Source: Pavona decussata (Eukaryota). From it: a stretch of DNA of 64,000 nucleotides. The position numbers were made by a program, and so were the translations under genes. This document shows positions 5,746 to 49,834 of this stretch, piece after piece. The notes under the pieces are model-generated. The model did no database searches, was not told where the DNA came from, and saw nothing but the letters and a program-made list of their open reading frames with translations. Numbering within the stretch: position 1 is the first letter of the stretch; every line of letters begins with the position of its first letter. The DNA lies in NCBI GenBank assembly GCA_977016875.1, contig CDRNST010000143.1, positions 868,001-932,000 of the forward strand, in the 5' to 3' direction.

Positions 5746-8700
5746 TAAAACCCAGACCCTTACCAGTGTATAGTTAGGTTTGATCGTGGCTGATTTCTCC
5801 TCAAGTTCAGCTGAGCTGATAAAGCCGAATTGACTGGAAAATTTCTCGGGGTGGTCGGTCATTTAGGAGATTACGACGCCTTTGTAATTTCTTCCTTTGC
5901 ATTTTATTTTCCATTTTCCTGGAGAAAGAGCTCTGTAAGCTTAAGTTTTATTTTCCCGAAATTTAAGATTTAACACTAAACTTTATTTTGGTGGAATAAT
6001 TTTTTTGGCAATTTTTGTCCCTCGATCAAATTTTTTATGGGTGAATAATTTGTTTCAGTTCTCATTTTAGAACATAGACGATCGTAGGTTTGTCAAGACT
6101 GGTGATGGGGCTGTTATTAAAAACAAAACAGTAAGACAACAGCAAGTTGACACTTTTATTTGACAGTGGCATTCTTCCTTTAAATAAAAGTCCTCAAATC
6201 TATTGGGCCCATGAAAACATTTAGTAACGGGGGCTTTTCGTTGAAGATGGTTTGTAAATTTGACGCGTTCCTTTCTTTAACCAAAACTGTGTTTCTGTCT
6301 GGTGTGAATACAGTCGCCAGTTTGACCTTTCATTGTTTTTATTATGTAAGTAGCCGGACGGTGCAACATAGATTTCACTGGCGGGATGCGGGATCAACTT
6401 ACTTGAAAAATCCTCTCGTTTTGCTAACTTTTCAATTAAGTACGACTAGAATGGCTTTGCGTACGGTAGATAAACGAAAAAGGTTAAACTGCAAGTAACT
6501 TAAAATTCAAGCCAGCCGTTCATAGACGGGTCCTCATATGTATTTCAAATATTTATCCAAGTACCTCAAAAAGGTCAGTGCAATCAGAGAAAAATAGATG
6601 TCGCGTGTTTACTTCGGTTTAGGTACTTTCAATTTTTAAATTTTGTGGCCAGTAAGCATGCAATTGTAGCATATGAGAGACTCTTAAATGAACTGACTTA
6701 TGCTGGTTCGGACTGACACGTGAGACGTCGGTATGGCTTTAATTTCAAAGTTGCAAATGAAAAACTCCTGAAATAGCGTTAACAAAACAAAAACCAACAT
6801 CGACTGCGGATTGTAACAATATTGTACCTTTATATATGCTTCGTATGTTTGAAGTTTGGAATAAACGCCTTCGGGTAAACGTGCAGTATTAAGCTTTGGA
6901 GGTGATAATGGGAATGTCACTCGCGATCGGTATCTATTATCTGCATGCTTGGGGAAATTACTTTTTCCGTAAGCGAATTAGTCGTAGGTACTTGCGAAAT
7001 AGTGCGAATAGCATCACGGAAACTTCCCGCCAGTCGTTTCCAGTTGATGACTGATATGTAAAACATTCAAAACCACCTGTATCTACAACAAGTGAATCCA
7101 TTTGACCCGGCGCACTTGTTTTATTTTCAGTTGATGTTGAAAAAAAAAATTGGTAGGCTAGTATTCTACAACTGCAAGACTGAGAAACCAGCAACCCGCT
7201 AAAGAGCTTGGTGAAGCACGAAAGATAAAGATAATGTTCACTTAGTAGGTTCGCTAACCATATCAAGACTCCGTAAACCTAGGCCTAGCGGAACCGTATC
7301 ATCACCCCGTCGCCGCCCTTTTTCATGATTTACCATGCGACTCGCATGCTATCCGATGATCTTTCATCACTTTAGGCTCCTAATAAAACTCAAAGAGAAA
7401 TACTTGCGACTCTGAGCATTGGTTTCTGAGGAGTGACGCAAGTTGTAGAATTTCAGTGTGTTTGTAAACACAGTGTCCGAGAATACTGTCGCGTGCACGC
7501 TATTCGCTACTCGGAAGTCTTACTTGTTAACTTGTGGTAAGCATAACAACTGCAACCCCGCTTGGAATTTTTATCCTTGTGACCAGCGATGTCAAAACAA
7601 AATCACTTTAGTCCGATTATTTACCAAGGCTATACAATTTCTACCTGTGTGTGTGGCCAAATAGTTCGGTCGATTCCTAGAGAATTATGCCAGTTATGGC
7701 CTTTCTTTAACCGCAAAGTTACGTCATAGCAAAGGCTTTCTACAAGTTACAATGAGTTGCAATGGCCCTTCCAGAAAACTGTAGGTACATCTAAAGATTG
7801 CAATGGTATAATGACCTGACGTTCACGTTTCTTACTCTGACATTCCACTAACCAAGCGACATGTCAGAAGATATATAACACGGAAATGCAGTAATTATAA
7901 GTGCGAAGCTAAAAGTTCAAGTATGAAAAAAAAAAAAAGGTGATATATCTGTATATATCGAGTGATACGTGCTTTGTCATGTTGGCGTGCTTTTGCAAAG
8001 GGAAGAACTGGCAAACGTAATTGTTTTATTACAGAAAAAATCTTCATCGAGTCACAGGTTACGGATACAAAGATTGAACGTCTTTTTAACTGGTACCTAA
8101 TGCTTAATGCCCTGTTGCGCATTGTGTTATCCTTAAAAATCAGTGCAAAACACAAGTTTAACATTGTTGCTCCGTTAAGTACTGAATCTCGTATGGATAA
8201 GATATAACCCTCGTTAAAATCGAGGGTGAATACACACACTATTTACTTTATGTGATATCATGCCACCGCACAGTAAACTGACTTTTGCCGCGAGGCGCAC
8301 TGCCCTTGAATCTAGTGGAATCGTAAGTCGTTGTTCAGCTGAGCTCTTTTATGAACAACACGTGCATATCATAGGCGATCACGTAAACTTACTACAGAAC
8401 TGCTGTACTCTCGCAGCAATTTGCTACTGTTGATTTATTCATCATTACAGAGAAACTGTCACAGGAAACTATTAGGTCAAAGCAGCGACGCGTGTGGGAA
8501 TTTGGAAAAAAGATTTCAAAATGTTGTTAAAACATACTTGTTTCAATTTCCGTTAACGAAACCACCAGTAATGTTTTGTCTATTTTAACATGATAGGCAT
8601 AATTTCCTTCATACCTTATCATTTTTCACAACAAACTTTGCATCACGTCCTTTCTTTTACAAACCAAAGTCGCACTCTTTCAAATGAACAGGTGCATGTA

Positions 8701-11445
8701 TCAGGGCATAGACAGAGATAAATCAGGCCCACATAGTTTCATCTCAGGTTAATTTCGTTAAGGACAGTGACAAGTCGTGAAATATTACGTCAAGAATTCA
8801 GAAACACTATCCCGGAGATCCCTCAGGAATGCCATTTAGCCCATTTACAAGTAGAGTAAAGAAAAGCTTAGAATGCGACCTTTGGACAGAGAAAACCGAG
8901 GTTTTCGAAAAACGCCGACGTAACATCAGTAATATGCGCATGCTCTCGTGTAATTGGCGCTTCTGTAGGCGATGAAGCGTTTTAGTGTGGACAGCAAAAT
9001 GGTAAGAAAAGCATAAGTGGGAAAAGAAAATATTTGTACGTTTTTCAATTTATTTGGTTAGTGTGAGCGGGGCCTTAAACTGCTTCTACGTAATTTGCAC
9101 GAGTAGAAAATTGTTGTTATTGATTGCTCACTTTGACCTCGTCATTTCCTTGCTACAAGACGTAAGACCAATGTGAAGATCCGGATTTGATTATGACACA
9201 CATTAAACTGTTACTTTTCATAGTCCAAAGAGTTTGTCATAACGGGAATCATGTTACAATGGTAATTTCATTAAAAAGTAACATTCGATGGGCATTATAT
9301 ATATATTTTGGGATACACTTAACGAATTCAAGGGGGAGGCAAAATTTTTATGTCCCATTTTAATCATTCCTTTCGTAATTTCAAGTTATTAATTGAACCG
9401 AAACGACAGCTAGTTAGAGACTTATCAGTAAGGTCAATCAGTCAGGAAATGACTGGACTTGAGGCGTTCGGGCTCCGCATTCCCTGCTATATGATGCATG
9501 TCTTCTGTTTCTTTTGTACGAGAAACTTAATTTCACCAAGATTTAACTTCTTCCCACCCAGTTTTGAATAATATCCGATAAACAATATTTTGGGAAAGAG
9601 CTTGCTGATCGTACTAAAGGGAGCCCGGTTTCCTGCTAAGATAACGGGCCGGATGTACTTGATGTGCCACCTATATAAATAAGACTTTGTTGAAAATGGT
9701 TTGTATATTTAAGAAACAAAAGATTGTTGAACTTTGGGTAAATCAGTCAAACAACTATTTCATGGATATTCCAATGAATCGTAGTTACACATTCTTACTG
9801 AAAGGGATGCCGTTAATTATGAACTTGACTCAAGAACTGTGAAACTTTGAACACGAGCACAAAATTTAAACGCAGTGCAAACTCAAAGTTCCTAACGGAC
9901 CCTATCGTTTTCTGTTGGAATGAAGATGACGGAGTCTTTAACAGATGGTATTTCGTAAGAAGTTTTAGCCGGCGGAGGTGGAATTTTTTAATTAGACCTG
10001 AGACAAACGAAGAACGTGGTGGGCACTTAAGCTAATGAGCTAATTTCTGTTGATAGATGTTTTCCGCTACTTCGTTGTGATTTCACCTTGAAATATTCAA
10101 TGCGACGTTTTCAATTACGATCATGTATCAAACATTTCCGGTTGAAATTATACCGTTTCCTTTAACTGATCAAAAGCTCACTTATCTTATTTCAAATGAC
10201 AAAGAAGGATGCCGCAATCATGTCGAAAATTTGTAAAATCTTTTAACCATTTGCTTTGAACTAGAAAGGTATCCAGTCTTTGGTCAACTACTTTTCATAC
10301 GACGGAATCTTCTAGTATATATTTCACTTACAACTTTGTTCTTGTGTCAGGCCGCACCTGATAGTACGAAACTTGTACAGGGCAGAAAGGAAAATGGATG
10401 GAAAGGTGATCGTTTGCTAAAGCAATAAGTTGAATTGTTGAAAACGTGAAGCTGTTTTTATAACCGCAGTGTGATCGCGTGTTAAAGAGCCATTGATCTG
10501 TAAATTGAGCACCTAATCAGGATGAACACCTTGGTGGCCTCTAATTTGGGGACATCGTAAACCGTACCAACAGACAACCTGACTTGTAAATAATTTTGGC
10601 GGGTAAAAAACGAAACATGAGCTGTCCCGCAGTTTGAGAAGGAGGGAGAGGGCGAATCTCGCCACTGGTTTAGAAAATGAGCATAATAACTCGTTTAAGC
10701 CACAAAAGGGTGAAAAATTTTAGGACCAGGTCTTTTGGTTAAAGTTTCCTTCATGTTGTTACGACAAGGAAAAGAGATGGCCGGTCACGGTCTTCTATAA
10801 TAATCGTAATACTTGATCAGATGTTGAAACATCAACCCTTATACCAATAAACGAGTACCAGGTTTGAAGAACGTGTTTTAAAGTTTCGATTAATGTTATT
10901 TCCCGTCAGTGCTACATTACCTTAATTCTTATCAACTGAAAGCTCTACCGCGCACTGTAAGGTGGATCTCCGAGAAAACCGGCGAAATAGAGAAAGAGAG
11001 AGAGAAAAAGGAGAAGAGCCTAGTGGTCAGCGCATTCCCAGTGACCGTGGGTGGTCCAAACAAAATGGTCCCAAATAAAACACATTTCGTTCAGATCTAA
11101 GTGAGCGCAAGTTCAATCTCCAACGAAGTCTCTCTACGCAACGGCCGCACGTGATATATTTACTATTTTTGTTTTTTTATTGCACGCTGGGTCTCCTTGC
11201 GTACTTCGGCCCACGAGTATAGAATTTCCCGCCAACACAACTTCTATTTCCTGTTCCGCGTCTGAAACACCAATCAGATGATCACATTGCATAATTCTGT
11301 AACTGGAACCGATCAAAATAAAACACTATTAGTATTTACGATAGTCCATTCATTCATCAGACTTGCAGAAACTACGATGCCAATAGTACAAACCAACGAC
11401 CCTGGAAAGCACGAAGTATAGTGAACCAGGCAAAAACACTGGAAC

Positions 11446-14400
11446 ATGGAGTTAGAACTTTATCAAACGATATTTATACTGACGACGCTGTTTAGCGGAT
11501 CTGATGCGAGGCCCGCCGCCTCCAGACAAACGGCAATCATTGGACTGAAGCAATCTGCCGTAAGTATCGTGTTGAGCTTCGGTAGTAATAACTTAAGCTG
11601 GGTCATAGTAGTGATCGTAAAAGAGAATAACATATGGGTCATGATCAACTGACGTTGTGTCAAAATACTGTCTAATCCACTGCGTTTCAATTCGAATTTG
11701 TTTTCAGAAATATCCACGTATTTCTCAGCTTCAAAAACCACAAGAGGACATATCTTCAAGACAAGGAATGCTTAGTAAGCTTCTGCCAGTGGTGGAAAAG
11801 GAACTTCAATCCAAGATCGACAGAATAGGAGTTATTAAGAGACATAAACGAACTGGCCAGTTCCGCAGAGAGTTTTTCTTTCCCTCCAAGGTTGACCACG
11901 TTTCACATACGAGCAAACTGCCGGCTGTCGAAATCACGCAAAGGACGGTGGGTCGCCTTGGCGGCCTTATCCGGCGAAAAGCTGCCGCGAAATTCAACAA
12001 ACTTGAACGTGCAAAAGTGCGTCGACGTCGCTATGTAAAACAAGGGTCTCAGTGGCACCATAACAACATCACATGGAATATTGATTGCTGGAGCACTAAG
12101 TTATCGCAGAATGTAGCTAAAACTACTTTAACAAAAGCATTCAGGCTTTGGGCTGAAGTGAGTCCACTGCAGTTCAGTTGGGTCGATCCACCAGCCAGCG
12201 TTGACATTACCGTGAAGTTTGCTAAAGGTATGAAAGAGTGAGAATTTATAGATACTTGGTTGTAGTTTCTGTTCTTTGTCAAACTCTCTTATTTATCTAC
12301 ATTCTTGTTTATAGTTGATTAGACCACATGTAGAGAAAATCATTTTAATTTGAAATTACGTGCCGTTTGCCGCCACTGTTAACTATATGAATCAATTTTA
12401 TGCAAGGCTTAGAAATTCACGAAAAAAACTCATTCAGGAAAAAAACGCGAATTCTATGATGACGCGCAGATCAGAGGTTTTTTCGGCATTCAATGATCAC
12501 ACATGAAATGCATTAGCACTTGCTATCAACACCTTTAATGAACAGAAAAATGGTTCATTTTTATTTTGATCTCTATTTTACTTGTTGCAAGTTTTGCAGT
12601 TTGCTCTTTTACTGTTTCCGTTTGTATCAGACTACTATTTACAATATTTCACATCAACCAGATTACCAGTTTTGTTTTGAAATGTAAGAAGTTCCGGAAG
12701 AGGTTATTCACAAATGTAAATCGTTTCCACAGATTGTATTTTCTGCTCACGCCACTGCTGACGAGCCTATTAGAAACCAGTTACATAAAAAAGCGATTTA
12801 CGAGCATCGCAGACCAGGTCACTGATCCCAATTTCCTCTGTAATATTTCTATTAAATTTTATGAAATCTGCACTTTGCACAATCCCTCGTTTAGCCGCTT
12901 TTTATTCCGGGGGGGGGGGGGGGGTACTCCCATATATGGGCTATATAGGTACGTGCCGCGAGATAAGTGTATGGTTTTTGAGGTTCTCAGTCAGTCCTTA
13001 AATAGGGTATCATTTTTTCTTCATTGAGCAACGCGTTCCTGGATTAGTCCTTAGATAGGGTACCTAAATTGTATCAGTTAAATTGAAGCTTGTAAGCGCC
13101 ACGTTTTACGAAAAAGAAATGGCTTTTTAAAACTAAAGTGTCCGCTGAAGTATTAGAGAAGCGATTTTCATAGAGATTTGTGTTTATCCGTGCACATCAG
13201 CCGTTGTTTTGGTCCCTTGAATAGGTTGTCATTTTTCGGGTTCGGTCCTTAAAAAGGGTATCCGTTTTCCCTTCCTTTACCCTTAAATAGGGGACGTTAG
13301 GGTTCGAGAACCTTCGCGGTACACCCCTATCGAAAATTTTCGGGAGTACCCGCCCCCCCTCCGGGTTTTCATTTCTATTCTGCAGATTTGAAATTCGAAC
13401 TACGTATTCCACATTCCGTTCTTTCGTCGGTTTTCTGTTACTTTGACAGTCTATCATAAAGAATTTCCAGTTGATTCTAGAAAACAAATCTCATGTGGCA
13501 AATCAGTGGCACGCATCCCTTACGTGGTCTCTTAATTAAGAACCCTGGGCAGTCATTTTGTGTCTATGGCCGTAGGGTATGTACCCAAGTGTTCTTCCAC
13601 ACCCACAGAACGACCAAATTCGCCTGTGTGCTCTAACCGGTTGTATTCAATTCGTCTCTTTTTTCCGCGGAAAGTGAATGCAGATCAAACTTTCAGCCCA
13701 AGTTTTTTTTTTTGGAACAAAGTTTGGCTGAGAAAGTTTGACAATACTTTATTCTTGGTGGTCATTGTGTTCACGCCCGGCTCACACCACACCGGATAGA
13801 CTCATTCGATCACATGAAAACCTTTTTCCGGCTAGAGTGTTCGACAAGAAACGATATCGTTACCAAAGTAAGGTACTAGTAACGAGGGCATTCTTTCGGA
13901 TTTATTTTAAAAGAAAGGATATATGAGAGAGAGAATGCACGAAAAATCACTTACCAAAAGAACGCAATCGACTTATTCCCCCCCCCCCCCTTCCCCCCCC
14001 CCCCAAAAAAAAAAAAAAAAAAAACCCTCAAACTCGAAAAGCGAAAATCTGGCTCTTTTGGGTAACTGTCCTCATTCCGGACCTTATTCTATTCTCTCTT
14101 TTGTGTTGTTTTGTTTTGTTTTCTCTGTACCACTAACACTTAATTATAATTCGTTCATGTCGTAAACGAGTAGAACCCAGAAAACAAATACTGTTCATTT
14201 TGCAATTCTACTGAGCCGGACGGTGTTCGTGTATAAATTCCGGAATAGCCCTGCCTTCCTTTTTTTCTGAGAATTATCAACGTTATTAGTCGGGTTGCGG
14301 ACAATTGCTTGGCACCTACGTTTGACAAACCGGAAAAGTTAATGAGCAGTATTCGCAGGTCACCGGACGGAACACCAGACAGTTGGCAGCAATTCTATAA

Positions 14401-17400: not shown

Positions 17401-18858
17401 AGGTGTAGAAATCCATATTTCTACCGGAGCGTATTCAATGGCGTCCTGACGCCATGACGCGAGGACCAGTCCCCCCGGTAGCCAGCAGTTAGTGTACGTG
17501 CCATAGTGCATTCATTACTGTTTTTAGTATTACTGGCCAACAGCCAACCAAACTGTCAATTTCCTCCACTAGGGGATCATGGCGATTCCGAGGACTTTGA
17601 TGGCGCAGGTAGGGTTCTTGCCCACGCTTTCTACCCAAACGCAGCCCTAACAGGGGATATTCACTTTGATGACGACGAACCGTGGACTACCTCTTCTGTT
17701 AGCAGTAACAGTGACAAGCAGTTGTTGCCGGTAGCAGTACACGAGATAGGGCATAGTCTGGGACTCATGCACTCTAAAGTATCAGGCTCCATCATGGATG
17801 CATTTTACAGCAGCCAAAACAACAAAGTCATTCTGAGTGATGATGATGTCAAGGGAATCCAAGATATTTATGGTATGCTATTTTTCATCCTTACTTATTT
17901 TTTTCCATTTTACTACTTCACCTTGACGATCAGAAAATGTAAATGCAATTATTATTATTACAGAGCTGGCTGTATTGCTGGCTGTTGGGCGCTTTTCTCT
18001 TTTAATTCCTTGTTTTTCTTTTCTTCTTCCTCACTTGCTTTTGTTCGATGCTCTTTTTTCCTGTCCTTTTCCTTTCCTTTCTTTTCTATCGTTTCCGTTT
18101 CCTTTCTTAAATATTGTTTTTTTCTTTTCTCTACCCTTCTCTCATGCTCTTCTCTGTTTTACGTTTCGTTTCCTTTCTTGAACTTTCCGTTTCATTCCTC
18201 TTTGCTACTGTCCGTTTATCATGTTTGCTCAATGGGTTCTTTTATTCTCTTTGAAGGTAAGTGTACTCCAACAGTGACTGCCATCGAATCATGGATGAAG
18301 GATGGTAGAACTTACATTTTTGACGCATCCAATTTCTGGCGCCTCAACGATTATGGTGGTGAAAGCGACCGTGGCTACCCAAAGCAGATATCCTCAAATT
18401 GGCAAGGTGTTCCAGACGACATCGACGAAATATTTCTCTGGGCTCACAACTGGAAAGTCTATTTTTTCAAAGGACATCAGTACTACAGATACAACGATTT
18501 TGACGGCAAAGTTGATTCCGGTTACCCTAAAAACATTTCGCAAGGATGGTTCGGATTACCAGCCGATGGAATTGATGCTGGGTTTTCCTGGAGTGATTAC
18601 AACAGTTACTTCTTTAAAGGGAGCGAGGTGTACAAGTACGATAACATTAATGACCAAGTTGCCTCTGGATACCCTAAACAAATCAAAGACGTTTGGCCTG
18701 GTATACCTAACAACATCGACAGTGCATTCCGGTGGTATTATGACGGTAATACGTACTTCTTTAAAAATGAATATTACTGGGCGTGGAACGACACCACTAA
18801 TCAAGCAATGGGCCCTTATCTTATCCGCGATCACTGGAAGAATATTTGTAATGTTTAG
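11446..18858 (+). CDS. Secreted matrix metalloproteinase (M10A, MMP21-like), copy 1; join(11446..11559,11708..12227,17573..17872,18257..18858), 511 aa
   Basis: Signal-peptide-like exon 1 ([21 protein letters not shown]). GT-AG introns in consistent phases 0,1,1. Furin site RRRR|Y at 12020-12031. Catalytic motifs [21 protein letters not shown], zinc motif [12 protein letters not shown] and Met-turn SIMDAFY. Four hemopexin repeats bounded by Cys (KC...ICNV*). CDS total 1536 nt with no internal stop. The [11 protein letters not shown], GSIM, YGxC and terminal WxxxCxV pattern resembles MMP21 from memory. Confidence 0.93.
12907..13365. mobile_element. hAT-like MITE in MMP copy 1 intron 2
   Basis: Termini CCGGGGGG..GGTACTCC / GGAGTACC..CCCCC.CCGGG. 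Absent from the equivalent position of copy 2 (~26175). Confidence 0.7.
14899..15084. mobile_element. Tc1/mariner(Tigger)-like MITE predating the duplication
   Basis: TA-CAGTAAACTC...GAGTTGACTG-TA. The homologous copy is at 27821-28006. Confidence 0.7.
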
Positions 18859-21513: not shown

Positions 21514-22907
21514 ATTTACTCAGCTTAGTGCATTTTCCAATGTTCTAAGGCGAACATTTTTCCATCGCAATTTTTTCGCTGTGTTGTGTGTAGGTGGCAA
21601 ATAGCTGCAATAAGTGTGTATCAAGGGTATTGAATTTGTAAAAAAAAAAAACAAGAGAAAGAAGAAAGAAAGAAAAACATTAGTTTTGTTATAACCCTTA
21701 TATACGAGATACTGTATCAGTAAAATCGGCGTAACTTTTAATTAAGTATAATTTCAAATCATAGATGCATTTGATATCGAATCAACAGAATCGACATTTA
21801 GCGGTGATCGAAAAGTCAATTTGAATTAAGCAATTATTCTATTTCAACGTATTCTATTCATGATTTAAAATAATATATAACAAATATCTGTGCGTTTTTG
21901 TTTAATGACTGTTGTAAAATTAAGCCAAAATAATCACATACGGTCAGTTGTTCTGAACCTCCCTCCTCCTCACCCGTCCAACAAAAAAATAAAAATAAAA
22001 ACAGTAAAAAGAAAATGGATAGAACAATCATGGCTCGAAGCAAAACATGTCCTCTCAGGACGCAGAAAAACGCCGCCACCTTGTTTGCTCTTACCTGTTA
22101 TATGACCTGTCAGGATAGCTTATTTCGTGTACTTTAAAAAGAACTTTGCTTCGATTGATTTAGAGTTTGGAGTACGAGCTTTTTTTAAATGTCAACGTAA
22201 ACGTATATTTACAGCAGTCATTCTAAAAACGCCCAGGCTTCCTTAGCTTTGTCTAGTTTGCTTAATGTCTGTCGTTGTTTCAGTGTAATAGTAATCACAA
22301 TTTTGTGTATTTGTGTTCATTTAGTTCCTATTGAAGTAAACCATCGAAATAAACCAATGCTTTGTTTAATCTCTATTTGTTCTGTCCTGTTTTTACTAAA
22401 ACCTGACGTTCTTATAACTTTCAAAATAAACTGCTTAGCCCTTGATGCTTTCCATACTTAGTGGGGCTACTGGCAGTACCTATTTTCCTTAAGGTAGAAT
22501 TGCAGAACACGCGTGAGTTCGCCCAAGAGTCGCTCAATCAAGCCCGTCACCCGAAATTGTAAAGGTAGAAATTTTACGGCTTTTCCTTTAACTGGTCAAA
22601 TGCTCACTTATCTTACTTCAAATGACAAAGAAGGATGCCGCAATCATGTCGAAAATTTGTAAAATCTTTTAACCATTTGCTTTGCACTTGAAAGGTATCC
22701 AGTCTTTGGTCAACTAATACTGATTCATACGACGGAATCTTCTTGTATATATTTCACTTACAACTTTGTTCTTGTGTCAGGCTGCACCTGATAGTACGAA
22801 ACGTGTACAGGGCAGAAAGGAAAATGGATGGAAAGGTGATCGTTTGCTAAAGCAATAAGTTGAATTGTTGAAAACGTGAAGCTGTTTTTAGATCGCGTGT
22901 TAAAGCA

Positions 22908-24066
22908 CAGGTAGCCCAAGCTCGAAATATGAGCGCTAGTTACGCAACGGTTGAAAAATATAAGGATTTGTATGGGAGAAAAACAGTTTATTTTAGAGGC
23001 TAAAAATATGAACGAATTTTTAAATAAAAATCACCCACCTTACTTCTCTTGTGTATTTCTTACCTCCTATGTTGTTTTTAGGGCGATTTAGCGCGATTCC
23101 AGTGAGTTTTAGTTCCATCGATATATATATAGGATACATAGAGGAGAAGGGGGGGGGGGGGGGTGAATAGGGGTATGTAAATCCGCCTTTTTAGCCTCTA
23201 AAATAAACCGTTTTTCTCCCCTACAAATCCTTATATTTTTCAACCGTTGCGTAACTAGCGCTCATATTTCGAACTAAAACTCACTGGAATCGCGCTAAAT
23301 CGCCCTAAAAACCACATAGGAGGCAAGAAGTACACAAAAAAGGTAAGGTAGGTGATTTTTATTTAAAAATTCGTTCGTGTTTTTAGCCTCTAAAATAAAC
23401 CGTTTTTCTCCCATACAAATCCTTATATTTTTCAACCGTTGCGTAACTAGCGCTCATATTTCGAACTAAAACTCAGGGAGAGGGAGAGGTCCAATGTCGC
23501 CACTGGTTTAGAAAATGAGGATAATAACTCGATTAATCCAGTAAAGGGGGAGGAATTTTCTGAGGACCATCAACCGTTGCGTAACTAGCGCTCATATTTC
23601 GAACTAAAACTCACTGGAATCGCACTAAATCGCCATAAAAACCACATAGGAGGCAAAAAATACACAAAAAAGTAAGGTGGGTGATTTTTATTTAAAAATT
23701 CGTTCATACTTTTAGCCTCTAAAATAAACCGTTTTTCTCCCATACAAATCTTTATATTTTTCAACCGTTGCGTAACTAGCGCTCATATTTCGAACTAAAA
23801 CTCACTGGAATCGCGCTAAATCGCCCTAAAAACCACATAGGAGGCAAGAAATACACAAAAGAAGTAAGGTGGGTGATTTTTATTTAAAAATTCGTTCGTA
23901 TTTTTAGCCTCTAAAATAAACCGTTTTTCTCCCGTACAAATCCTTATATTTTTCAACCGTTGCGTAACTAGCGGGGAAGGGAGAGGTCTAATGTCGCCAC
24001 TGGTTTAGAAAATGAGGATAATAACTGGATTAATCCAGTAAAGGGGGAGGAATTTTCTGAGGACCA
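22908..24066. repeat. Complex insertion of ~192-bp units (one inverted, several tandem) upstream of MMP copy 2
   Basis: tcaaccgttgcgtaactagcg... recurs at ~23240, 23432, 23570, 23761 and 23953, with an inverted copy at ~22923-23115. Absent from unit 1. Confidence 0.8.
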
Positions 24067-24829
24067 GGTCTTTTGGTTAAAGTTTCCTTCATGTTGTTAC
24101 GACAAGGAAAAGAGATGGCTGTTCACGGTCTTCTATGATAATAGTAATACTTGATCAGATGTTGAAACCTCAACCCCGATATCAATAAACGAGTACCAGG
24201 TTTGAAGACCATGTTTTTCCCGTCAGTGCTGCATTACCTTAATTCTTATCAACTGAAAGCTCTACCGCGCACTGTAAGGTGGACCTCGGAGAAACCCGGC
24301 GAAATAGAGAAAGAGAGAGAGAAAAAGGAGAAGAGCCTCTAGTGGTCAGCGCATTCCCAGTGACTGTGGGTGGTCCAAACAAAATGGTCCCAAATAAAAC
24401 ACATTTCTTTCGGATCTAAGTGAGCGCAAGTTCAATCTCCAACGAAGTCTCTCTCTACGCAAACTGCCGCACGTGATATATTTACTACTTTTGTTTTTTT
24501 ATTGCACGCTGGGATTCCCACCGTACTTCGGCCTATGAGTACATATACATATAGAATTCTCCGCCCACCGACAAGTTCTATTTCCTGTTTCCCATAGCCC
24601 AGCGTCTGAAACACCAATCAGATGATCACAATGCATAATGCTGTAACTGGAACCGATCAAAATAAAACACTATTAGTAGTTACGATAGTCCATTCATTCA
24701 TCAGTTAGACTTGCAGAAACTACGTTGCCAATAGTACAAACCAACGACCCTGGAAAGCACGAAGTATAGTGAACACACAACGACCCTGGAAAGCACGAAG
24801 TATAGTGAAACAAGCAAACACACTGGAAC

Positions 24830-27144
24830 ATGGAGTTAGAAATTTATCAAACGATATTTATGCTGACGACACTGTTTAGCGGATCCGATGCAAGGCCCGC
24901 CGCCAGACAAACGGCAATCATTGGACTGAAGCAATCTACTGTAAGTATCGTGTTGAAGCTGGGTCATAGTATTGATCGTTAAACAGAATGACATCTGGGT
25001 CATGATCAATTGGCGTTGTGTCAAAATACTGTCTAATCCACTGCGTTTCAATTCGAATTTGTTTTCAGAAATACCCACGTATTTCTCAGCTTCAAAAACC
25101 ACAAGAGGACACATCTTTAAGACAAAGAATGCCTAGTAAGCTTCTGCCAGTGGTGGAAAAGGAACTTCAATCCGAGATCGACAGAATAAGAGTTATTAAG
25201 AGACATAAACGAACTGGACAGTTCCGCAGAGAGTTTTTCTTTTCTTCCAAGGTTGACCACGTTTCACCAACGAGCAAACTGCCGACTGTCGAAATCACGC
25301 AAAAGACGGCAGGTCGCCTTGGTGGCCTCACCCGGCAAAAAGCTGCCGCGAAATTCAACAAACTTGAACGTGCAAAAGTGCGTCGACGTCGTTATGTAAC
25401 ACAGGGGTCTCAGTGGCATCATGACACCATCACATGGAATATTCCATCCAATGGCTGGAGCACTAAGTTATCGCGGTATGAAACTAAAACTACTTTAACA
25501 GAAGCATTTAGGCTCTGGGCAGAAGTGAGTCCACTGCAGTTCCGTTGGTTAGATCCACCAGCCAGCGTTGACATTACCGTGAAGTTTGCCAGAGGTAAGA
25601 AAGAGTGAGAATTAGATGTACTTGGTTGTAATTTCAGTTCTTTGTCAAACTCTGTTATCTATCTACATTCCTGCTTATAGTTTGTGTTTAGTTGATTAGA
25701 CCCGGCCACATTAGGGAAAATCATTTTAATTTAAAATTATGTGCCGTTCGCCGCCACTGTTATGCAAGAAAAAATTATTCGGGAAAGAAAACGCGAATTC
25801 TTTGATGACGTGATCAACCCCTTTAATGAACCGAGAAATATTCTGTAAAATGGTTCCTTTTTATTTTGATCTCTATTTGGCTTGTTAAAGTTTGCTTTTA
25901 CTGTTTCCGTTGACATCACACTATTTTTAACAATCAGATTACGGGTTTTGTTTTGAAATGTAACTTCCGGAAGAGGTTATTCACAAATATAAATCGTTTC
26001 CTCAGATTGTATCTTCTGCTCACACTACTAATGACGGGCGTATTAGAAACCGTTGACATAAAAAAGCGATTTACGAGCATTGCAGACCAGGTCACTGATC
26101 CCAATTTCCTCTGTAATATTTCTATCAAATTTTATGAAAGCTTCGCTTTGTGCAATCCTTCGTTTAGCCGCTTTTTATACCTATCCGACAGGTTTGAAAT
26201 TCGAATTCCGTTCTTTCGCCAGTTTTTGTTACATCATAAAGAGATTCCAGTTGATTCTAGTAGAACAAATTTTATGTGGCAAATCAGTGGCACGCATCTC
26301 TTTCGTGGGCTATTAATTAAGAACCCTATGCACCAAAGTGTCTTTCCACACCCACAGAACGACTAAATTCGCCCTTGCGCTATGATCGGCTGTTTCTAAT
26401 TCGTTTCTATTTTCTCCGGAAAGTAAATGCAGATCAAACTTTCAATTCAAGATTTTTTTAGAACATATTTTGGCTGAGAAAGTTTGACAATACTTTATTC
26501 ATGGTGGTCATTGTGTTCACGCCCAGTTCACACCACACCGGATAGACTCATTCGATCACATGAAAACCTTTTTCCGGCTAGAGTGTTCGACAAGAAACAA
26601 TATCGCTACCAAAGTAAGGTACTAGTAACGAGGGCATTCTTTTGGAACTATTTTAAAAGAAAGGATATATGAGAGAGAGAATGCACGAAAAATCACTTAC
26701 CAAAAGAACGCAATTCGTTGTTTTGTTTTATTTTTCTGTACCACTAACACTTAATTATTATTCGTTCATGTCGTAAACGGGTAGAACCCAGAAAACAAAA
26801 ACTGTTCGTTTCGCAATTCTACTGAGACGGACGGTGTTCATGTATAAATTCCGGAATAGCTCTGCCTTCTTTTTTTGTTCTGAGAATTATCAACGTTATT
26901 AGTCGGGTTGCGGACAATTGCTTGGCACCTACGTTTGACAAGCCGGAAAAGTTAATGAGCAGTATTCGCAAGTCACCGGACGGAACACCAGACAGTTGGC
27001 AGCAATTCTATAAGCGAGGATAAGAAGGTGTAAGTTCTCCGTATTGAGTGTTGTAATGGCGTCATCGCATGCATTCTCTCACGATCAGTCTATCCCAAGA
27101 AAAGCCCGCCTAAAATAGATGTATCTAGCAATTATTCCACGAGC

Positions 27145-30100: not shown

Positions 30101-32180
30101 TCAAAATTTTGTCACCGCAATAAACGTTTTTGCATTCTTACCGTTTAACATATTACTCGAGCACTCGTGAAGCAAATGACCAAGCCACGAGTAGTCTGAG
30201 AACAAGCCGAAAAATTACTTACCAAAACAAGAAGGGGAACCCTTTGGCGGGTGGTATGAACTCAGGATTTGGAAACAACCTGCAACAGCCAATCTTACTG
30301 TATTACAGAGTAGAGTGTTTCAGACTTTTGGGGACTTGGAAAGTTTTCAAAAATAATAAAATGCATTATCGTTTGTCTCGTGAGGTAGTCACTTGGGATG
30401 TAGATTGTGACGTTTCGGCTGCTTGCTGCGATCGGTGCATTTTGTCCCTTAAGTTTTTCAGCGAGAGGTTGTTCCCTCAGAAGTTTGTTGTTGGGAATTT
30501 TTTTGTACATGGAGTTATGGAAGCTAGAAGTTAGTGTATGTGCCGTGCTCTGAGGCCATAGTGCATTCATTACTGTTTAAGTATTAGTAGCCAACAGCCA
30601 ACCAAACTGTCAATTTCCTCCACTAGGGGATCATGGGGACACGCAGGACTTTGATGGCGTAGGAAGGGTTCTTGCCCACGCTTTCTACCCAAACACAGCC
30701 CTATCAGGGGATATTCACTTTGATGACGACGAACCGTGGACTACCTCTTCTGTTAGCAGTAACGGTTACAAGCAGTTGTTGCCGGTAGCAGTACACGAGA
30801 TAGGGCATAGTCTGGGACTCATGCACTCTCAAGTATCAGGCTCGATCATGAATGAATATTACAGCGACCAAAACAACAGAGTCATTCTGAGTGATGATGA
30901 TGTCAAAGGAATCCAAGATATTTATGGTATGCTATTTTCATCCTTACCTATTTTTTTCTATTTTACTTCTTCACCTTAACGATCTGAAAATGTAAATACA
31001 ATTATTATTATTCTTATTAATATTATTATAGAGAAGGCTGTATTGCTGGCTGTTGCGCGCTCTTACCTTTTAAGAACGAACATTGAATAATTTGTATACC
31101 TTGAAACATGACAGCACCGGCAATGAATAGATAAATTGTACACTCCCCGAAGTAGTTTTGGGTAGTTTTGAACCGTCTCGCCAACAACGAAAAAATCGCA
31201 TTGAGCTCAGTAAATGTGATATTTGTTTATGGGATATAATGATTGATGTTCATAGAAAAAAATCAGCGAAATCGGTGAAAAGTCGAAATTTGCCTTATCC
31301 GTTCTTACGCGAACAGCCTCTTAATTCTTTGTTTTTCTTTTCTTCTTCTTTACTTGCTATTGTCCAATGCTCTTTTTTCCAGTCCTGTTCCTTCCCTTTC
31401 TTTTCTATTGTTTCCGTTTCCTTCCTTAAATAACTTTTTTTCTTGTTTTCTCTACTTTTCTCTCATGTTCCTCTCTTGTTTTGGTTCCGTTTCCTTTCTT
31501 GTCCTTTCCCTTTCATTCCTTTTTGCTACTGTCCGTTTATCATGTTTGCTCAATGGCTTTTTTTTATTCTCTTTGAAGGTAAGTGTACTCCAAAAGTGAC
31601 TGCCATCGAATCATGGATGGGGGATTATAGAACTTACATTTTTGACGCAACCAATTTCTGGCGCTTCAACGACTATGGTATTAAAAGCGACCGTGGCTAC
31701 CCAAAGGAGATATCCTCAAATTGGCCAGGTGTTCCAGACGACATCGACGAAATATTTCTCTGGGGTCACAACTGGAAAGTCTATTTTTTCAAAGGACATC
31801 AGTACTACAGATACAACGATTATGATGGCAGGGTTGATTCCGGTTACCCTCTAGACATTTCGAAAGGGTGGTTTGGATTACCAGCCGATGGAATTGATGC
31901 TGGGTTTACCTGGAGTGATTACAACAGTTACTTCTTTAAAGGGAGCAAGGTGTACAAGTACGATAACATTAATGACCAAGTTGCCTCTGGATACCCTAAA
32001 CAAATCACAGACGTTTGGCCTGGTATACCTAACAACATCGACAGTGCATTCCGGTGGTTTTATGACGGTAATACGTACTTCTTTAAAAATGAATATTACT
32101 GGGAATGGAACGACAGGCTCCATCAAGCAATGGGCCCTTATCTTATCCGCGATGGCTGGAAGAATATTTGTAATGTTTAG
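24830..32180 (+). CDS. Secreted matrix metalloproteinase (MMP21-like), copy 2; join(24830..24940,25069..25594,30627..30926,31579..32180), 512 aa
   Basis: Paralog of copy 1 with identical intron positions and phases. RRRR|Y furin site, [12 protein letters not shown], Met-turn SIMNEYY and hemopexin domain ending [11 protein letters not shown] total 1539 nt, open. Confidence 0.93.
27127..27420. mobile_element. Hairpin-headed interspersed repeat inserted in copy 2 intron 2
   Basis: ~110-nt imperfect palindrome at 27129-27240 (caattattccacgag...ttgaataattg). The empty site is in copy 1 near 14510. Confidence 0.7.
27821..28006. mobile_element. Tc1/mariner-like MITE (paralog of 14899-15084)
   Basis: TA-CAGCCAACTC...GAGTTGACTG-TA. 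Confidence 0.7.
28214..28352. mobile_element. Small TIR element with 9-bp TSD and internal (GGGA)n
   Basis: TAACCTGCGATC...GATTGCAGGTTA flanked by direct repeats TGGCCTCCC. Copy 1 has a single TGGCCTCCC at ~15290. Confidence 0.85.
31071..31320. mobile_element. DNA-transposon fragment inserted at TTAA in copy 2 intron 3
   Basis: Absent in copy 1 intron 3. Right end ccgttcttacgcgaacagcctc-TTAA; the left end retains only taagaacg. Confidence 0.55.
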
Positions 32181-35956: not shown

Positions 35957-38900
35957 CTACCCTGAGTCGTGAGCCGGAACAGAATACGTTGAGCTCACAG
36001 ATCGCCTCAAATGCATAGGAAAGTCTTTCGCCGTAGCATCATTGAGTTCACATTCCCCTTCTTCTTTTCCTACCTTAGAGTAGTAGTTGATTGATTTACA
36101 CAAAGGATTGTTCACACACAAAAACGCACAATGAATTAGCGACGATGTGTACCGCTTGTAGATCACATGATAGGCAAATGCCTTTTGCTCATAAGTGATG
36201 AAGAACTGTTCTTTGCTCATCTCATTCTTGTCTGGATAGAGAAGAGAAAAGTTTACAAGATTAACGCCCGATCCACACAACTGCGCTTTTCGTTTGAAAC
36301 CGTTTACTTTTTGATGCGTTTCCTCAACTGTCAAAATGCCAGTGAAAACGAGACGTGTGAAAACGGTGTACTTAAACGAAAACCCATTCTTTAAAGCAGA
36401 AATGAAAATGCATCATCCCCCCCCCCAAAAAAAACCCAAACACACAAAAAAACAACAACAAAAACGTTTAGATCAGAGTAGAAACATGATGACGCCGGCT
36501 TTTTTTAAACGCTGAACGCTGTTTTAGTTTGGACAAACGGCAAACGAATAATGGGGTTAGTTTCTAAAGAAACTGTGGTTCTGCTTCAATGGCCATTGGG
36601 AGTGGAAAAGAATGTTCGGCGGCTTTATCATCAGAGTTGATAAGGTAGTTTAACCGCTAAAGAGATTCGAGAGCGGACGTTCTGAGCGTTAGCCCTTTGG
36701 TCAGAGCGTATCGTCTCCGGGAAACGCTCTGACGAAAGGATAACGCTTGAAACGCTTGGATTTCTCCGACACTTATGGTGGCCAAATTACCTTATGATTT
36801 TTGTTGATAAAACAAAACGTACATTCATTTAGTTTGGATGGTTGGCGAAAACGCATAACAAAGTAACCGCTTTTAAGAAAAAAAAAGCAAGTATGGAGAA
36901 CAATAATTCTTACATTGTCATCGCTCATGGTTATCACTCCAGTGCAGGCGTGTTAGAGTTAAAAGGAGTTTGCATGAGGCCTCTTGGAAAAACGCGCAGA
37001 AAAAAGTGTACACCGGGACGCGTAGGATACGCAGGAAAATCAAAACAACCTAATAGCACGACCGGGGAAAACGTCCCGCTTCGCCTGAAAACATGCTTAT
37101 TCAGCAAAAGTAAGGTGTTGCAAATCTTTAAAATGGACCGATGATTTGTATGCATTATACAAACTATTCAAGTGACTTTGAATAATGTGCATGGAGCCTA
37201 AGGTGTATCTTCCTCAGCTCCCCTTAAGGGCTCGTTCCCTCGAATCTGGTTCTTTCCATGGTGCGCGAACGATATCTCGCCGCTCGACTATTTTGAAAGG
37301 GCTCTACGACTTTCGCCACTCTCTTGTTGATCTGTATTCCCAGAAACCTAAGCATGAAGGTGGAGCATTTGTCACGTTGTAATCAGGATCTCAGGGATCC
37401 AGTGTCCTTTTATACAAAGAGTGTACTGCACCATGGGGCGAACATAACAAAATATTTTATCCTTGTCCCCCAGCCGACGTATTGAGCCCATAACCTTCCG
37501 CACACTGCTTGAATGCAATTTGATCTCTACTTAGATAAGAACATGGGTTCGACTCCCCTCGGTAGCCCAGATTTTTCTTAGTAGCCTCATGCTAAAAGTT
37601 CTCTCAAATTACCTTGTCCCTCGAAGGGCTGCGCGAATTTGCATACGTACTCATACCACATGTTACAAGGCGTATCATTCCACTTGCCATTAGCTGCTAC
37701 TAGAATCACACAATCACCTATCCCAAAGTCATCATCTGGCTCGCTATCTCCCCAGTTTGTATACGAAACAGTGCTGCCATCGGACCAAACAAAAGTTCCT
37801 TCGATATCTGTGTCGGTAAGGCCGACAAAAACTGCGCTTTTTCCTCCGGTGAGACTGCGGACGAATTCGTTTTCTTGAGCGCTGTGAATTGAAGCCAGAT
37901 TTGCGCCGTGTTGTTTGCACAAAGCTGAAGCGTTGGAAAACGGAGTTTGCTCAGAGGATACCCAGTAGCAGGCTTGATTCCATTCTTGCCAGCCGGCTTT
38001 ACATTGGATTGACCTGGCGTGCCAGGGTAATCCGATAACTGAAAGAGCGAAGATAAAGGGAAAGTACTGAAGAAAAGGGGAATGAAAAAGGAAGTGTGAT
38101 TAAAGTATTTCGTTTATAGGCCTCCACTGGCTCGTCTGTAGCTGTACTTAATTCTAGCCGGCGAGCAAGGTTCCCTTCGTTTGCCTTAGCGCACTCTTCG
38201 CACTCTGATATTCCTTTTTTTAATTTTTTTTCTGCAATTCACTCAACTAATATATTTCATACAAAAGATCGCAACGGATATCCGGCTCGAATTTATCAGT
38301 TTGCTAAATCGGGTTCTCTTTCTATAATTTCTTTTGTATGGAAAGAACAATGTGCTATAAAATAACGACCGCATTCAAATTGAGTCTAAATTAAACAGTA
38401 TATTGCTTAAAAAAATAATAATGCAAGATTATACTTTGGAATAGCCCAGACTGGATTTAATGCCTCTTGGAACGGTTGTGAAATTTAAAGGTGCTTAACT
38501 GACATGTAAAAACCTTTCCGAACTTTTTTTCTGTATTAATTTCCTGAAATCTTATTACCGAACCGGTATAGAACAAGAATAATAATAATAATAACGAAAT
38601 GCTATCCTTGGTCAACAAGCAACTCCGAGTCCTATAAGCCCAATATAAAGCTCATTATTAAAAATAACCACAATCGGTGTTTGGTGTGCCACGTTTGCTC
38701 AGTTTTAATCCTCGTCTTCGGATTACCCCGAATGTTTTAATAAAAAAGAAAATGCTACATGTAATAAAAATATATCATAAAAATCAAATTTTTTGTTATT
38801 TGAGCGCAGGTGAAAGGTCTTTTTTTTTGTTTCCGTTGAGCGAATTAAAAAAGAATACATTTCAATAAAAGCAACAATTGTGACGTTCAAGGGCCATTTA

Positions 38901-47385: not shown

Positions 47386-49761
47386 TCAGTTAGCAAGATT
47401 TATAGAAAGCTTGTTAATGTCGCAATACTTAAAAACTAATTTTAGTTCCTCATTCATGATGGTTTCAAGATGCTGTAACTTATCACATGTGTAGAACATA
47501 TTTGTGTCATCAGCAAAGATTCGAAATGATAGTTTCTTAGAGCAATTTGGCAAGTCAGTAATATAAAGTAAAAATAAAAGTGGGCCTAGCGTTGACCCTT
47601 GCGGTATGCCACAAACAATCGTTTCATAACTGGATTTAGTATTGCCAATCTCAACAAACTGAGTGCGATTATGTAAGTAGCTTTTAAACCAGTTAAAGGG
47701 AGTTCCACGTACTCCATAGTGATAGAGTTTTGATAACAGAATGTCATGGTTCACAGTATCAAATGCCTTTGAGAAATCTAAGAAAAGACCACAGGTAACC
47801 ATTTTCTTATCTAAAGCCTTTTTGAGTGAATCAGTGATTTCTAAAATAGCTTGTTCAGTTGAGTGTCCTTTCCTAAACCCAAACTGATACTGATACAAAA
47901 TGTTATTTTTTTCTAAGAAATTATTTAGTTGATTATAAATTAGTCTTTCGAACACCTTACTAAAGGGTGATAAAGTTGAAATCGGCCTGTAGTTACCTGT
48001 GTTGGTGACATCACCATTTCTGTAAACTGGAGTGACCCGTGAGACTTTCATTACATTGGGCACTATGCCTGATTCAATTGATTGATTGTAAATTTAGGTG
48101 AAAAGTACTGACAGTGGATCAGCAGCTAGTTTTATTAATTTGTTAGGTATATCAATTGATGATTTATTTGCATCCAGGGTTTTAAACAAGGTAGAAACTT
48201 CAGGTTCAGTGACAGGAAACATAACAAAACTATTGGCTGGAGATGATGTGATGTATTGCAAAGGGTTTTCGTTGCTGTTCTCAATTTTGCTGGCCAGAAG
48301 TGGGCCAACATTAATAAAATGTTTATTGAACTGATCTGCAATATCAGCATTATTAGTGTATGCTTTGTTGTTCCTAAAAATTCTTTGCGGTGTAGACTGG
48401 GCCTTAGTTTTTCTTTTGATGAGTGTACCAATTAGCTTCCATGTAGCTTTTAAATTACCTTTGCACAGATCAAAGTGTTTACAAAAATAAGTTTTCTTAC
48501 TGATGTTTTTAAGGTAGTTCAATCTATTAGAATATTTTTTAAACTCACAGACTTTGCACGGATCTCTGGATAGAAAATGCGTTTTATACATAGTATGCTT
48601 AATTTTAATAGATTTAAGGATCCCTTTCGATATCCATGGTTTTTGTAGGAGTCTTTGTTTATTTCTTGAGGTTTGTTTTTTTGGTGCATGTTTGTTAACG
48701 ATCGATTTAAGTGTATCAATAGTGAGGGCAGTTATTTCATGCAAATCAGTACATTGCATAGTAATATCATTCCAATCAATCGCATAAACATCCTGAAGGA
48801 ATGAATCTGCATTAAATGTACTATCGTCTCTAAAGTACATTTTTTGTTTTTGTTTTTTAACCTTTATGTCAGTCATACAGAAAACTGGTAGATGATCTGA
48901 GATGTCAATAGTTAAAATCCCAGAAACCAAACTATTAACTGTATTTGTATAGATATGATCAATCAATGTTGTAGTATGACTAGTGATTCTAGTAGCCTTA
49001 GTTATTACTGGTAGAAGATCATGAGAGAAAAGCATATCAAGATATCCGCCTGTTTGCTGATGTGTGTGATGCTTTAAGAGGTCAATATTCATATCCCCCA
49101 GGATGTATGCATCATACTTGTTTAGATTTAACTCTTTTAGAAGTTCGTCAAATTTCAATGTAAATTCTTCCACATTTGCAGATGGGTGTTTGTAAACACA
49201 TCCAAGCATAATGTGTTTCTTATTATTACGAGGGTCTATTTCAACCCAGCATGACTCAACTAATGGGAGATCAATTCTTAGATCTGGTCTGGGAATAGCT
49301 TTAAGGTTCTTACTAACATAAAGGGCTGTACCACCTGCAAGGGTAGGTGAATCAGTATGGAAAAGGTGATAATTAGTCAGATCAACATTGGAAATAGAGT
49401 TTGGATTCAGCCGGGTTTCAGTAATGGCTATTACATCAGGCCTAGAATCTAGTGAGTAAAACATATCATTTAACAGGGTTAGGTTTTTAGTCAGACTTCT
49501 CACATTTCAGTGAAAGAGGGAGATACCTTTGCCTCGGCTATTATTTAGCGCATTATTAACCTTAGACATATTATAATAATCAGAATGTGGGTTAATAAAT
49601 ATCGAATCAGGGTCAGCTTCATCATTTTTATCTGGGTTAGGTAATAAATTATAGAGATCTGAATCCATGAGAGCATGAAATTGCCTAGACCAAATATTAT
49701 TAATGAAGCTAAATTCCCTATCATCTAATTCGTAAAAGGGTAATATCTGTAATGTGTTCAT
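47386..49761 (-). pseudogene. LINE ORF2 (endonuclease-reverse transcriptase) with two in-frame stops, C-terminus missing
   Basis: APE motifs NVRSL, AITETRL, GDMNID, TLIDHI and SDHLP. RT motifs NYRPIS, QFGFR, DFSKAFD, GIPQGSTLGP and FADDT. Single frame with TGA at 49507-49509 and TAA at 48094-48096; ends abruptly at KLSINLAN. Confidence 0.92.
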
Positions 49762-49834
49762 GTCATGGAATTCGTATATTAGATTTACATAAATTCAAAT
49801 AAAAAATATAAATATTATACTATTTAGCTCATAT

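Follow-up and report, generated by a model that had tools for sequence, protein, structure and literature searches.

Two tandem matrix metalloproteinase genes

The window analysed here is a 64,000-nucleotide stretch of the Pavona decussata genome (contig CDRNST010000143.1, positions 868,001 to 932,000 of the forward strand), in which we identified two tandem, plus-strand genes of four exons each, copies A and B, both encoding a complete matrix metalloproteinase (MMP) whose propeptide contains no cysteine. Copy B lies 13.4 kb downstream of copy A, and the two share one protein layout: a signal peptide, a 125-residue propeptide, a complete catalytic domain and a four-blade hemopexin domain (Table 1).

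Table 1. Features of the two gene copies and of their paralogs on contig C143. Positions are those of the window unless prefixed with C143; arrows mark predicted cleavage points.
Feature	Position	Strand	Description
Copy A exon 1	11446..11559	+	ATG, 38 codons, phase 0; signal-peptide-like N-terminus and first 17 pro-residues; no Cys
Copy A intron 1	11560..11707	+	GT..AG, 148 nt, phase 0
Copy A exon 2	11708..12227	+	173 codons plus one base; pro-region, then start of catalytic domain
Copy A pro-region in exon 2	11708..12031	+	108 residues, no Cys, net charge +20, RRRR at end (12020-12031)
RREFFFPSK	11864..11890	+	Best-conserved pro-motif; R53, E55, F57, F58 and K61 shared by all 8 coral sequences compared
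KVDHVS	11888..11905	+	Kept only among the paralogs of the Pavona decussata genome (all five)
LPAVEITQ	11918..11941	+	MAFFT-aligned with Nematostella PRCGVTEQ; Val74 at switch-Cys position
Furin-type site RRRR↓Y	12020..12034	+	R-x-R-R↓Y/F invariant across all cnidarian relatives examined
Copy A exon 2 mature part	12032..12227	+	N-terminal third of catalytic domain; ends in phase 1; Peptidase_M10 profile positions 1-57
Copy A intron 2	between exons 2 and 3	+	~5.3 kb
Copy A exon 3	17573..17872	+	Remaining catalytic domain (HGD..FDG..AHAF..GDIHFD), zinc site 17740-17775, Met-turn SIMD
Copy A exon 4	18257..18858	+	Four hemopexin repeats, Cys pair (KC...IC), no hinge; ends ...WKNICNV and stop
Copy B exon 1	24830..24940	+	37 codons, no Cys
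Copy B exon 2	25069..25594	+	108-residue pro-region to RRRR↓Y, then catalytic start; whole exon without Cys
Copy B exon 3	30627..30926	+	Catalytic domain; zinc site from 30794
Copy B exon 4	31579..32180	+	Hemopexin domain and stop
Paralog L005	C143:861434-861952	+	Exons 1-2 intact, Cys-free pro-region
Paralog L002	C143:936044-936559	+	Exons 1-2 intact, Cys-free pro-region
Paralog L004	C143:772845-773357	-	Truncated exon 1, Ser-to-Cys in FFFPSK, frameshift at exon 2 end

Sequence and Pfam searches were run on single exons of the window genes, and full-length analyses (fold, complex and tree) used either natural orthologs or the open reading frame (ORF) 17506-18858, which reads through intron 3. 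The Peptidase_M10 profile (PF00413) matched exon 3 (E=1.4e-35) and the end of exon 2 (E=3e-9), together spanning profile positions 1-158 of 159 and beginning 7 residues past the RRRR↓Y site, at residue 115 of the exon 2 product. Four stretches of exon 4 matched Hemopexin (PF00045; E=1.3e-38). The HExxHxxGxxH zinc site, the Met-turn SIM, the structural-site motifs and the hemopexin Cys pair are intact in both copies; the paired cysteines, residues 2 and 197 of the stretch encoded by exon 4, would form the closing disulfide, and the catalytic domain (...DIYG) runs directly into the KC of the hemopexin domain without a hinge. Both genes belong to the known M10A matrixins and do not represent a new kind of enzyme. 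The N-terminus of copy A is hydrophobic and signal-like, and homologous MELEIYQ... starts are found in four coral proteins introduced below (P0002, P0003, P0004 and P0006).

A propeptide without the cysteine switch

Exon-by-exon translation of both copies revealed no cysteine in exon 1 or in the 108 pro-residues encoded by exon 2. A six-frame regular-expression scan of positions 9000-12300 and 22500-25700 found no PRCG-type motif, its sole match being one chance "RCGL" on the minus strand. In-frame stop codons (TAG TGA, 11419-11424) lie just upstream of the copy A ATG, so an upstream exon cannot supply coding sequence to this frame, and intron 1 is too short to conceal an exon. The exon-2 part of the copy A propeptide is strongly basic, with 29 Lys and Arg residues against 9 Asp and Glu (isoelectric point, pI, 11.7). 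PG_binding_1 (PF01471) gave no match in the window exons at E<=1, nor in full-length orthologs at E<=0.1, and the first 114 residues of the exon 2 product have no Pfam match at all.

These results bear out much of what a prior sequence-only reading of this stretch had claimed or expected for positions 11509-12031, a span that opens where the signal peptide ends and closes with the final Arg of RRRR: a very basic propeptide with neither Cys nor PRCG, no PG_binding_1 match, and intact ORFs with a complete zinc site, to which we can add that splice sites, catalytic motifs and hemopexin domain are whole in both copies. Also identified was a second furin-consensus site within the propeptide, RHKR↓T (11840-11851, exon 2 residues 45-48; copy B 25201-25212), which is not kept in other corals, where the corresponding residues read KLKRT, RLERG or RLQQI.

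Transcript evidence and the 5' end of the gene

Run X5 covers exon bins only and is RNA-like, and one of its contigs carries the GT..AG joint 11559->11708; another leaves the end of exon 2 at 12228 and enters sequence similar to the beginning of exon 3. Runs X16 and X18 also reach into introns and flanks, as expected of DNA. Upon closer inspection, the spliced contig agrees at 9 of 10 variant sites with paralog L002, a 94% identical copy just past the window end; strictly speaking, therefore, the exon 1-exon 2 junction, which had been marked for confirmation, is proven for this sister gene and for neither window copy.

One X5 contig extends 84 nt upstream of 11362, and the last 30 nt of this extension map with 2 mismatches to C143:858054-858083 (L007:1501-1530), ending ...CACAAG/GT at a site 2.5 kb upstream of paralog L005. 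This sequence is a 5' non-coding exon, and it cannot supply a prodomain because in-frame stops precede the ATG. A putative diverged counterpart with a GT donor lies at ~8039-8058, ~3.4 kb upstream of the copy A ATG.

A missed or alternative 5' exon supplying a PRCG prodomain would reduce the absent switch to a gene-model artefact, and in favour of this, 84 nt of an RNA-like contig map to a separate 5' exon upstream of paralog L005. That exon, however, joins upstream of the in-frame TAG TGA and is hence non-coding, intron 1 spans only 148 nt, no PRCG occurs in any frame for 2.4 kb upstream, and the presumed ortholog transcripts begin at the same Met and run straight through. An artefact of this kind is thus extremely improbable; an upstream coding exon was ruled out, and the PRCG-bearing alternative exon envisaged in the sequence-only reading came down to a non-coding one.

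Paralogs and other metalloproteinases in the genome

The exon-2 sequence is present in five copies in the genome, all on contig C143 in a tandem array, and in four of the five the pro-region is Cys-free and exons 1 and 2 are intact; the remaining member, L004, is probably a pseudogene. A canonical prodomain profile produced at least 24 matches genome-wide, none of them on C143, and PRCG-type motifs were present in 7 of the 10 sequences fetched. Ordinary switch-bearing MMPs thus occur elsewhere in the same genome, and the loss is specific to this clade or cluster. The MMP family is strongly expanded in Pavona decussata, and two large clusters of matches to the canonical prodomain profile were found at C319:306956-395984 and C12:1304960-1399159. 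Within the array, copy A carries, as the sole Cys encoded by its exon 2, an unpaired Cys in the mature catalytic domain (12086-12088; exon 2 residue 127, NIDCW) that is shared with L002 and absent from copy B, L005 and all orthologs, which have PSNGW or similar at this position.

Ratios of nonsynonymous to synonymous substitution (dN/dS; Nei-Gojobori) among paralogs ranged from 0.23 to 0.84 in the pro-region and from 0.14 to 0.94 in the adjoining catalytic part, and between copies A and B were 0.60 in exon 3 and 0.93 in exon 4. The propeptide is under at least as much constraint as the other parts of the gene, and constraint is weak throughout in these young duplicates. For the hemopexin exons (18259-18855 versus 31581-32177), we counted 30.5 nonsynonymous and 7.5 synonymous changes; the exon 4 ratio might be a sign that selection on the substrate-recognition domain is relaxed or diversifying.

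Such ratios, 0.5-0.9 in all exons between A and B, together with the truncated exon 1 and frameshift of L004, are what might be expected of young tandem duplicates under relaxed selection and heading toward pseudogenes. We nevertheless regard a decaying cluster as very improbable. Neither A nor B shows damage in its ORFs, splice sites, zinc site, structural motifs or hemopexin Cys pair; divergent coral genera, and their presumed transcripts, retain the Cys-free layout; and spliced RNA was recovered from L002. A pseudogenised, unexpressed locus, which the sequence-only reading had named as a refuting outcome, does not fit intact genes, a transcribed sister and orthologs with the same architecture.

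Coral orthologs and switch-bearing cnidarian relatives

Relatives were found by searching with ORF 17506-18858 (exon 3, read-through intron and exon 4), and 121 proteins were retrieved. The closest full-length matches were P0002 of Oculina patagonica together with P0003, P0004 and P0006, the last belonging to a cluster that includes Orbicella faveolata XP_020623825.1, named "matrix metalloproteinase-16-like" in RefSeq. All four proteins begin with MELEIYQ..., continue through a basic propeptide to R-x-R-R↓Y, and contain exactly two Cys, both in the hemopexin domain; their Cys-free propeptides have net charges of +20 to +25. The contigs encoding P0003, P0004 and P0006 are 1.6-3.6 kb long (1.6-1.8 kb for P0003 and P0004) and carry the whole protein of ~500 residues uninterrupted, and are presumably transcripts. 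A more distant protein from Stylophora pistillata (P0102) also possesses a Cys-free, basic propeptide.

Conversely, PRCGVxD ahead of RRRR is kept in Rhopilema esculentum (P0008, XP_065071686.1), Sanderia malayensis (P0013) and P0011. As the Nematostella vectensis record (P0009) is partial, its genomic locus was read instead, and ORF L008:9734-10219 was found to read ...SSPRCGVTEQNMRKGRETLRDFANRLRVTTTRRVRRFVTQGSKW..., with SSPRCGVTE, RVRRF 33 residues later, a basic insert between them and the catalytic start, all in one exon. A short distance upstream is an ORF for a signal peptide, giving the same layout as in the coral genes.

A maximum-likelihood tree was built from 39 rows, comprising 37 of the 121 retrieved proteins and two window rows, with the long-branched P0031 excluded; most rows were represented by catalytic and hemopexin regions, copy A by exons 3-4 and copy B by its hemopexin exon only. 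The cnidarian clade was supported at 100/99 and, within it, a Cys-free coral clade including both window copies at 99/94, in which the window copies (100/99) are sister to the Oculina/Orbicella group (100/97), with anemones and scyphozoans as neighbours. Within present sampling, loss of the switch would map to the stony-coral stem. That the locus represents a lineage without a cysteine switch, as first proposed from the sequence, is upheld by this single clade of stony-coral orthologs sharing the trait. For the label MMP21-like, applied in the sequence-only reading, no support emerged: named bilaterian best matches were MMP-17, -24, -25, -14 and stromelysin-3, with no MMP-21 among the 120 matches listed or in the tree.

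Four other full-length hemopexin MMPs without a switch Cys were also identified (P0068, P0085, P0039 and P0041). P0068 and P0085 keep a canonical-looking helix (FQQFGSLEVKGSLDDDT) with VENTPG in place of PRCG, and P0039 has a propeptide of only ~30 residues ahead of HKRY. With two further invertebrate lineages (P0068/P0085 and P0039) among 121 proteins, loss of the switch Cys is therefore rare but not unique.

What all Cys-free coral pro-regions have in common is their charge: net +17 to +25 and pI 11.5-12, including divergent Stylophora, against net 0 to +7 in canonical prodomains. This retention, and the confinement of the trait to stony corals in the sampled set, raise the possibility that the polybasic propeptide has a function of its own, either as an anchor to glycosaminoglycans or acidic skeletal matrix or as a cationic peptide, with loss of the switch as a side effect. 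Set against this, pro-region identity between coral lineages is only 39-45%, and the internal RHKR site is not kept between species; we consider such a function improbable as the primary explanation.

Decay in place or replacement of the prodomain

The coral propeptide appears to be a sequence orphan, with no relatives found outside corals. A pro-region profile searched against 1.84 billion representative proteins returned four matches, all coral exon-2-like ORF fragments, and a word-index search with the P0003 pro-region returned 5 proteins, all coral. In a protein-cluster search with the pro-region, the best-scoring clusters (0.86) were unrelated ones from phages and bacteria, recognition stayed under the usual threshold, and no lead emerged. 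When nine coral pro-regions were compared with nineteen canonical prodomains by hhalign, only RRRRY aligned, at a probability of 9%.

MAFFT placed LPAVEITQ of copy A on PRCGVTEQ of Nematostella, a suggestive placement without statistical support; at the position of the switch Cys, another coral fragment has Phe, and the Oculina/Orbicella group has a 4-residue deletion. The sequence-only reading had described the prodomain as replaced. In Nematostella, PRCG, a basic insert and RVRRF occupy the same exon, and this shared exon structure, position and basic insert, with PRCG retained in outgroups, favour decay over a swap; most likely, the prodomain decayed in place.

Search for a substitute zinc ligand

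Eight coral pro-regions share fifteen invariant residues: Q12, V29, S35, R39, V42, R53, E55, F57, F58, K61, T77, K103, R105, R107 and R108. E55 is the sole acidic residue among them, and no His, Asp or Cys is conserved. KVDHVS, put forward in the sequence-only reading as a candidate Asp/His zinc ligand, was ruled out, as it is not kept outside the Pavona decussata paralogs and other corals have KTGRVL, KTGRII, KKGRII or KSGQGS instead. Glu30 (VVE) was likewise ruled out, being Lys in the coral fragment P0183.

In an AlphaFold2 model of P0003 residues 22-300 (44-row alignment), the predicted local distance difference test (pLDDT) score exceeded 90 in the catalytic domain and stayed below 50 over most of the pro-region. 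Within the pro-region, two low-confidence helices were modelled (P0003 residues 72-86 and 112-132), and REFFFPSK falls in a low-confidence stretch. The top 50 Foldseek matches to the model were all MMP catalytic domains (E ~1e-17; template modelling score by target 0.80-0.90), including MMP-13, -8, -7 and -1 at 42-45% identity, and no pro-MMP was among these 50. When the P0003 pro-region and catalytic domain were modelled as a complex with zinc, the score was 0.00, which is evidence neither way.

The conservation of RREFFFPSK, with E55 as the only acidic residue kept across eight coral sequences, would be compatible with a non-thiol switch in which R-x-E-F-F-F-P-S-K would occupy the active-site cleft with Glu55 on the zinc until furin cleavage releases it. 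Aspartate switches are known in karilysin and the astacins, on very different pro-segments (PMC6949598). The same residue is Lys in the otherwise intact paralog L002, however, the Cys-free Stylophora protein P0102 lacks the motif, and AlphaFold places the motif at pLDDT below 50; a carboxylate switch of this form is accordingly unlikely, although it is the likeliest of the alternatives weighed here.

Proposed mechanism

Taken together, these findings make it probable that the Cys-free coral matrixins derive from an enzyme whose prodomain decayed on the stony-coral stem, and that they are activated by furin-type cleavage alone, without thiol latency. An ordinary cysteine-switch prodomain would have decayed on that stem into a propeptide of ~125 residues that is polybasic (~+20), predicted to be largely disordered, and Cys-free. 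The signal peptide would direct the pro-enzyme into the secretory pathway, late in which a furin-type proprotein convertase would cut the invariant R-x-R-R↓Y and expose the usual Tyr/Phe N-terminus of the catalytic domain, followed directly by hemopexin. Latency through a thiol on zinc would be absent, with no strictly conserved residue to replace the Cys; inhibition before cleavage would be steric or weak, at most through Glu55, and control would fall to cleavage by the convertase, to expression and to inhibitors. From the features described above we infer that the signal peptide functions, that a convertase cuts, that latency is absent and that the prodomain decayed in place.

Several points weigh against this account. 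E55 is kept in the eight coral sequences and is a possible carboxylate ligand of the zinc, and latency could act through a non-thiol contact invisible to the tools used here. The AlphaFold alignment has ~9 informative rows over the pro-region, so that low confidence is no proof of disorder there. By hhalign, the coral propeptide shows no statistically detectable homology to canonical prodomains, and decay in place is drawn from exon structure, position and the suggestive MAFFT alignment. The signal peptide was called by eye; the spliced contig is that of L002 and not of copy A or B; and paralog dN/dS is only moderately below 1 throughout (0.2-0.9), which indicates weak constraint.

A broader proposal is that stony corals acquired a new control of a hemopexin MMP, through either a carboxylate switch at the REFFFPSK glutamate or tethering of the pro-enzyme to acidic or skeletal matrix until its release by a convertase. 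To our knowledge, no carboxylate switch is known in animal MMPs, and we regard the proposal as rather unlikely. If true, either form would connect this change with the rise of the calcifying lineage.

Other features of the window

The start of intron 2 is common to both copies, with ~450 nt open in one frame (12566-13027 and 25953-26366) and, in copy A, a run of 17 G at 12903-12919. This shared stretch looks like a duplicated intron or repeat and not an exon, because orthologs join exon 2 straight to exon 3. Further downstream, minus-strand ORFs at 35957-36334 and 37587-37922 resemble, by eye, a PAN/apple-type module and a C-type lectin domain (…WNDTPCNMWYEYVCKF), and are presumably exons of a neighbouring gene. 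Long minus-strand ORFs at 47386-50380 resemble, also by eye, the endonuclease and reverse transcriptase of a non-LTR (long terminal repeat) retrotransposon.

Comparison with known metalloproteinase systems

MMP-21 lacks a hinge and carries an insert ahead of its furin site. The coral genes have no hinge, and have a basic insert before RRRR that is common to Nematostella. More generally, they resemble the furin-activated hemopexin MMPs (MT-MMPs, MMP-11, MMP-21 and MMP-28) in possessing a signal peptide, RX[K/R]R before Tyr/Phe, HExxHxxGxxH and a four-blade hemopexin domain with a Cys pair, and differ from them in lacking the PRCGxPD Cys and a detectable three-helix prodomain, and in their polybasic propeptide. 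In MMPs of animals, plants and fungi, the PRCGxPD cysteine switch is described as an almost universal means of latency (PMC6949598, PMC7290392).

The orthologs of Nematostella, Rhopilema and Sanderia fall in the same clade (100/99) and have the same furin site, but keep PRCGV where the coral genes, which are far more basic, have Val, Phe or a 4-residue deletion. In a full-text literature search, the review "Matrix metalloproteinases outside vertebrates" excepted, no account turned up of coral or cnidarian MMPs that have lost the cysteine switch, and the genes are filed as "MMP-16-like" without a flag for the missing switch. A loss in an otherwise complete coral MMP, bracketed by switch-keeping anemone and jellyfish orthologs, provides a clean comparative system for asking whether an MMP can do without the thiol switch when an intracellular convertase alone activates it, and what a long polybasic propeptide does instead.

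Two known enzymes bear most directly on this comparison. MMP-23 is reported to lack the switch motif and to be furin-activated, and possesses no signal sequence, a short prodomain, and a cysteine array and Ig-like domain that replace hemopexin (PMC7290392). The coral proteins share with it the status of an animal MMP that lacks the motif and would be furin-activated, and differ in having what reads as a cleavable-type signal, a long propeptide and a hemopexin domain, with no Cys array. Karilysin is a bacterial MMP with a 14-residue pro-segment and an aspartate switch on the zinc, and the extended pro-segments found in karilysin and in the astacins have unrelated sequences (PMC6949598). These metzincins have Cys-free latency, and the coral propeptide likewise lacks a switch Cys, yet it is ~125 residues long, and none of its Asp, Glu or His residues is strictly conserved. 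The examples of MMP-23 and karilysin make plain that this family can function with alternatives to the cysteine switch.

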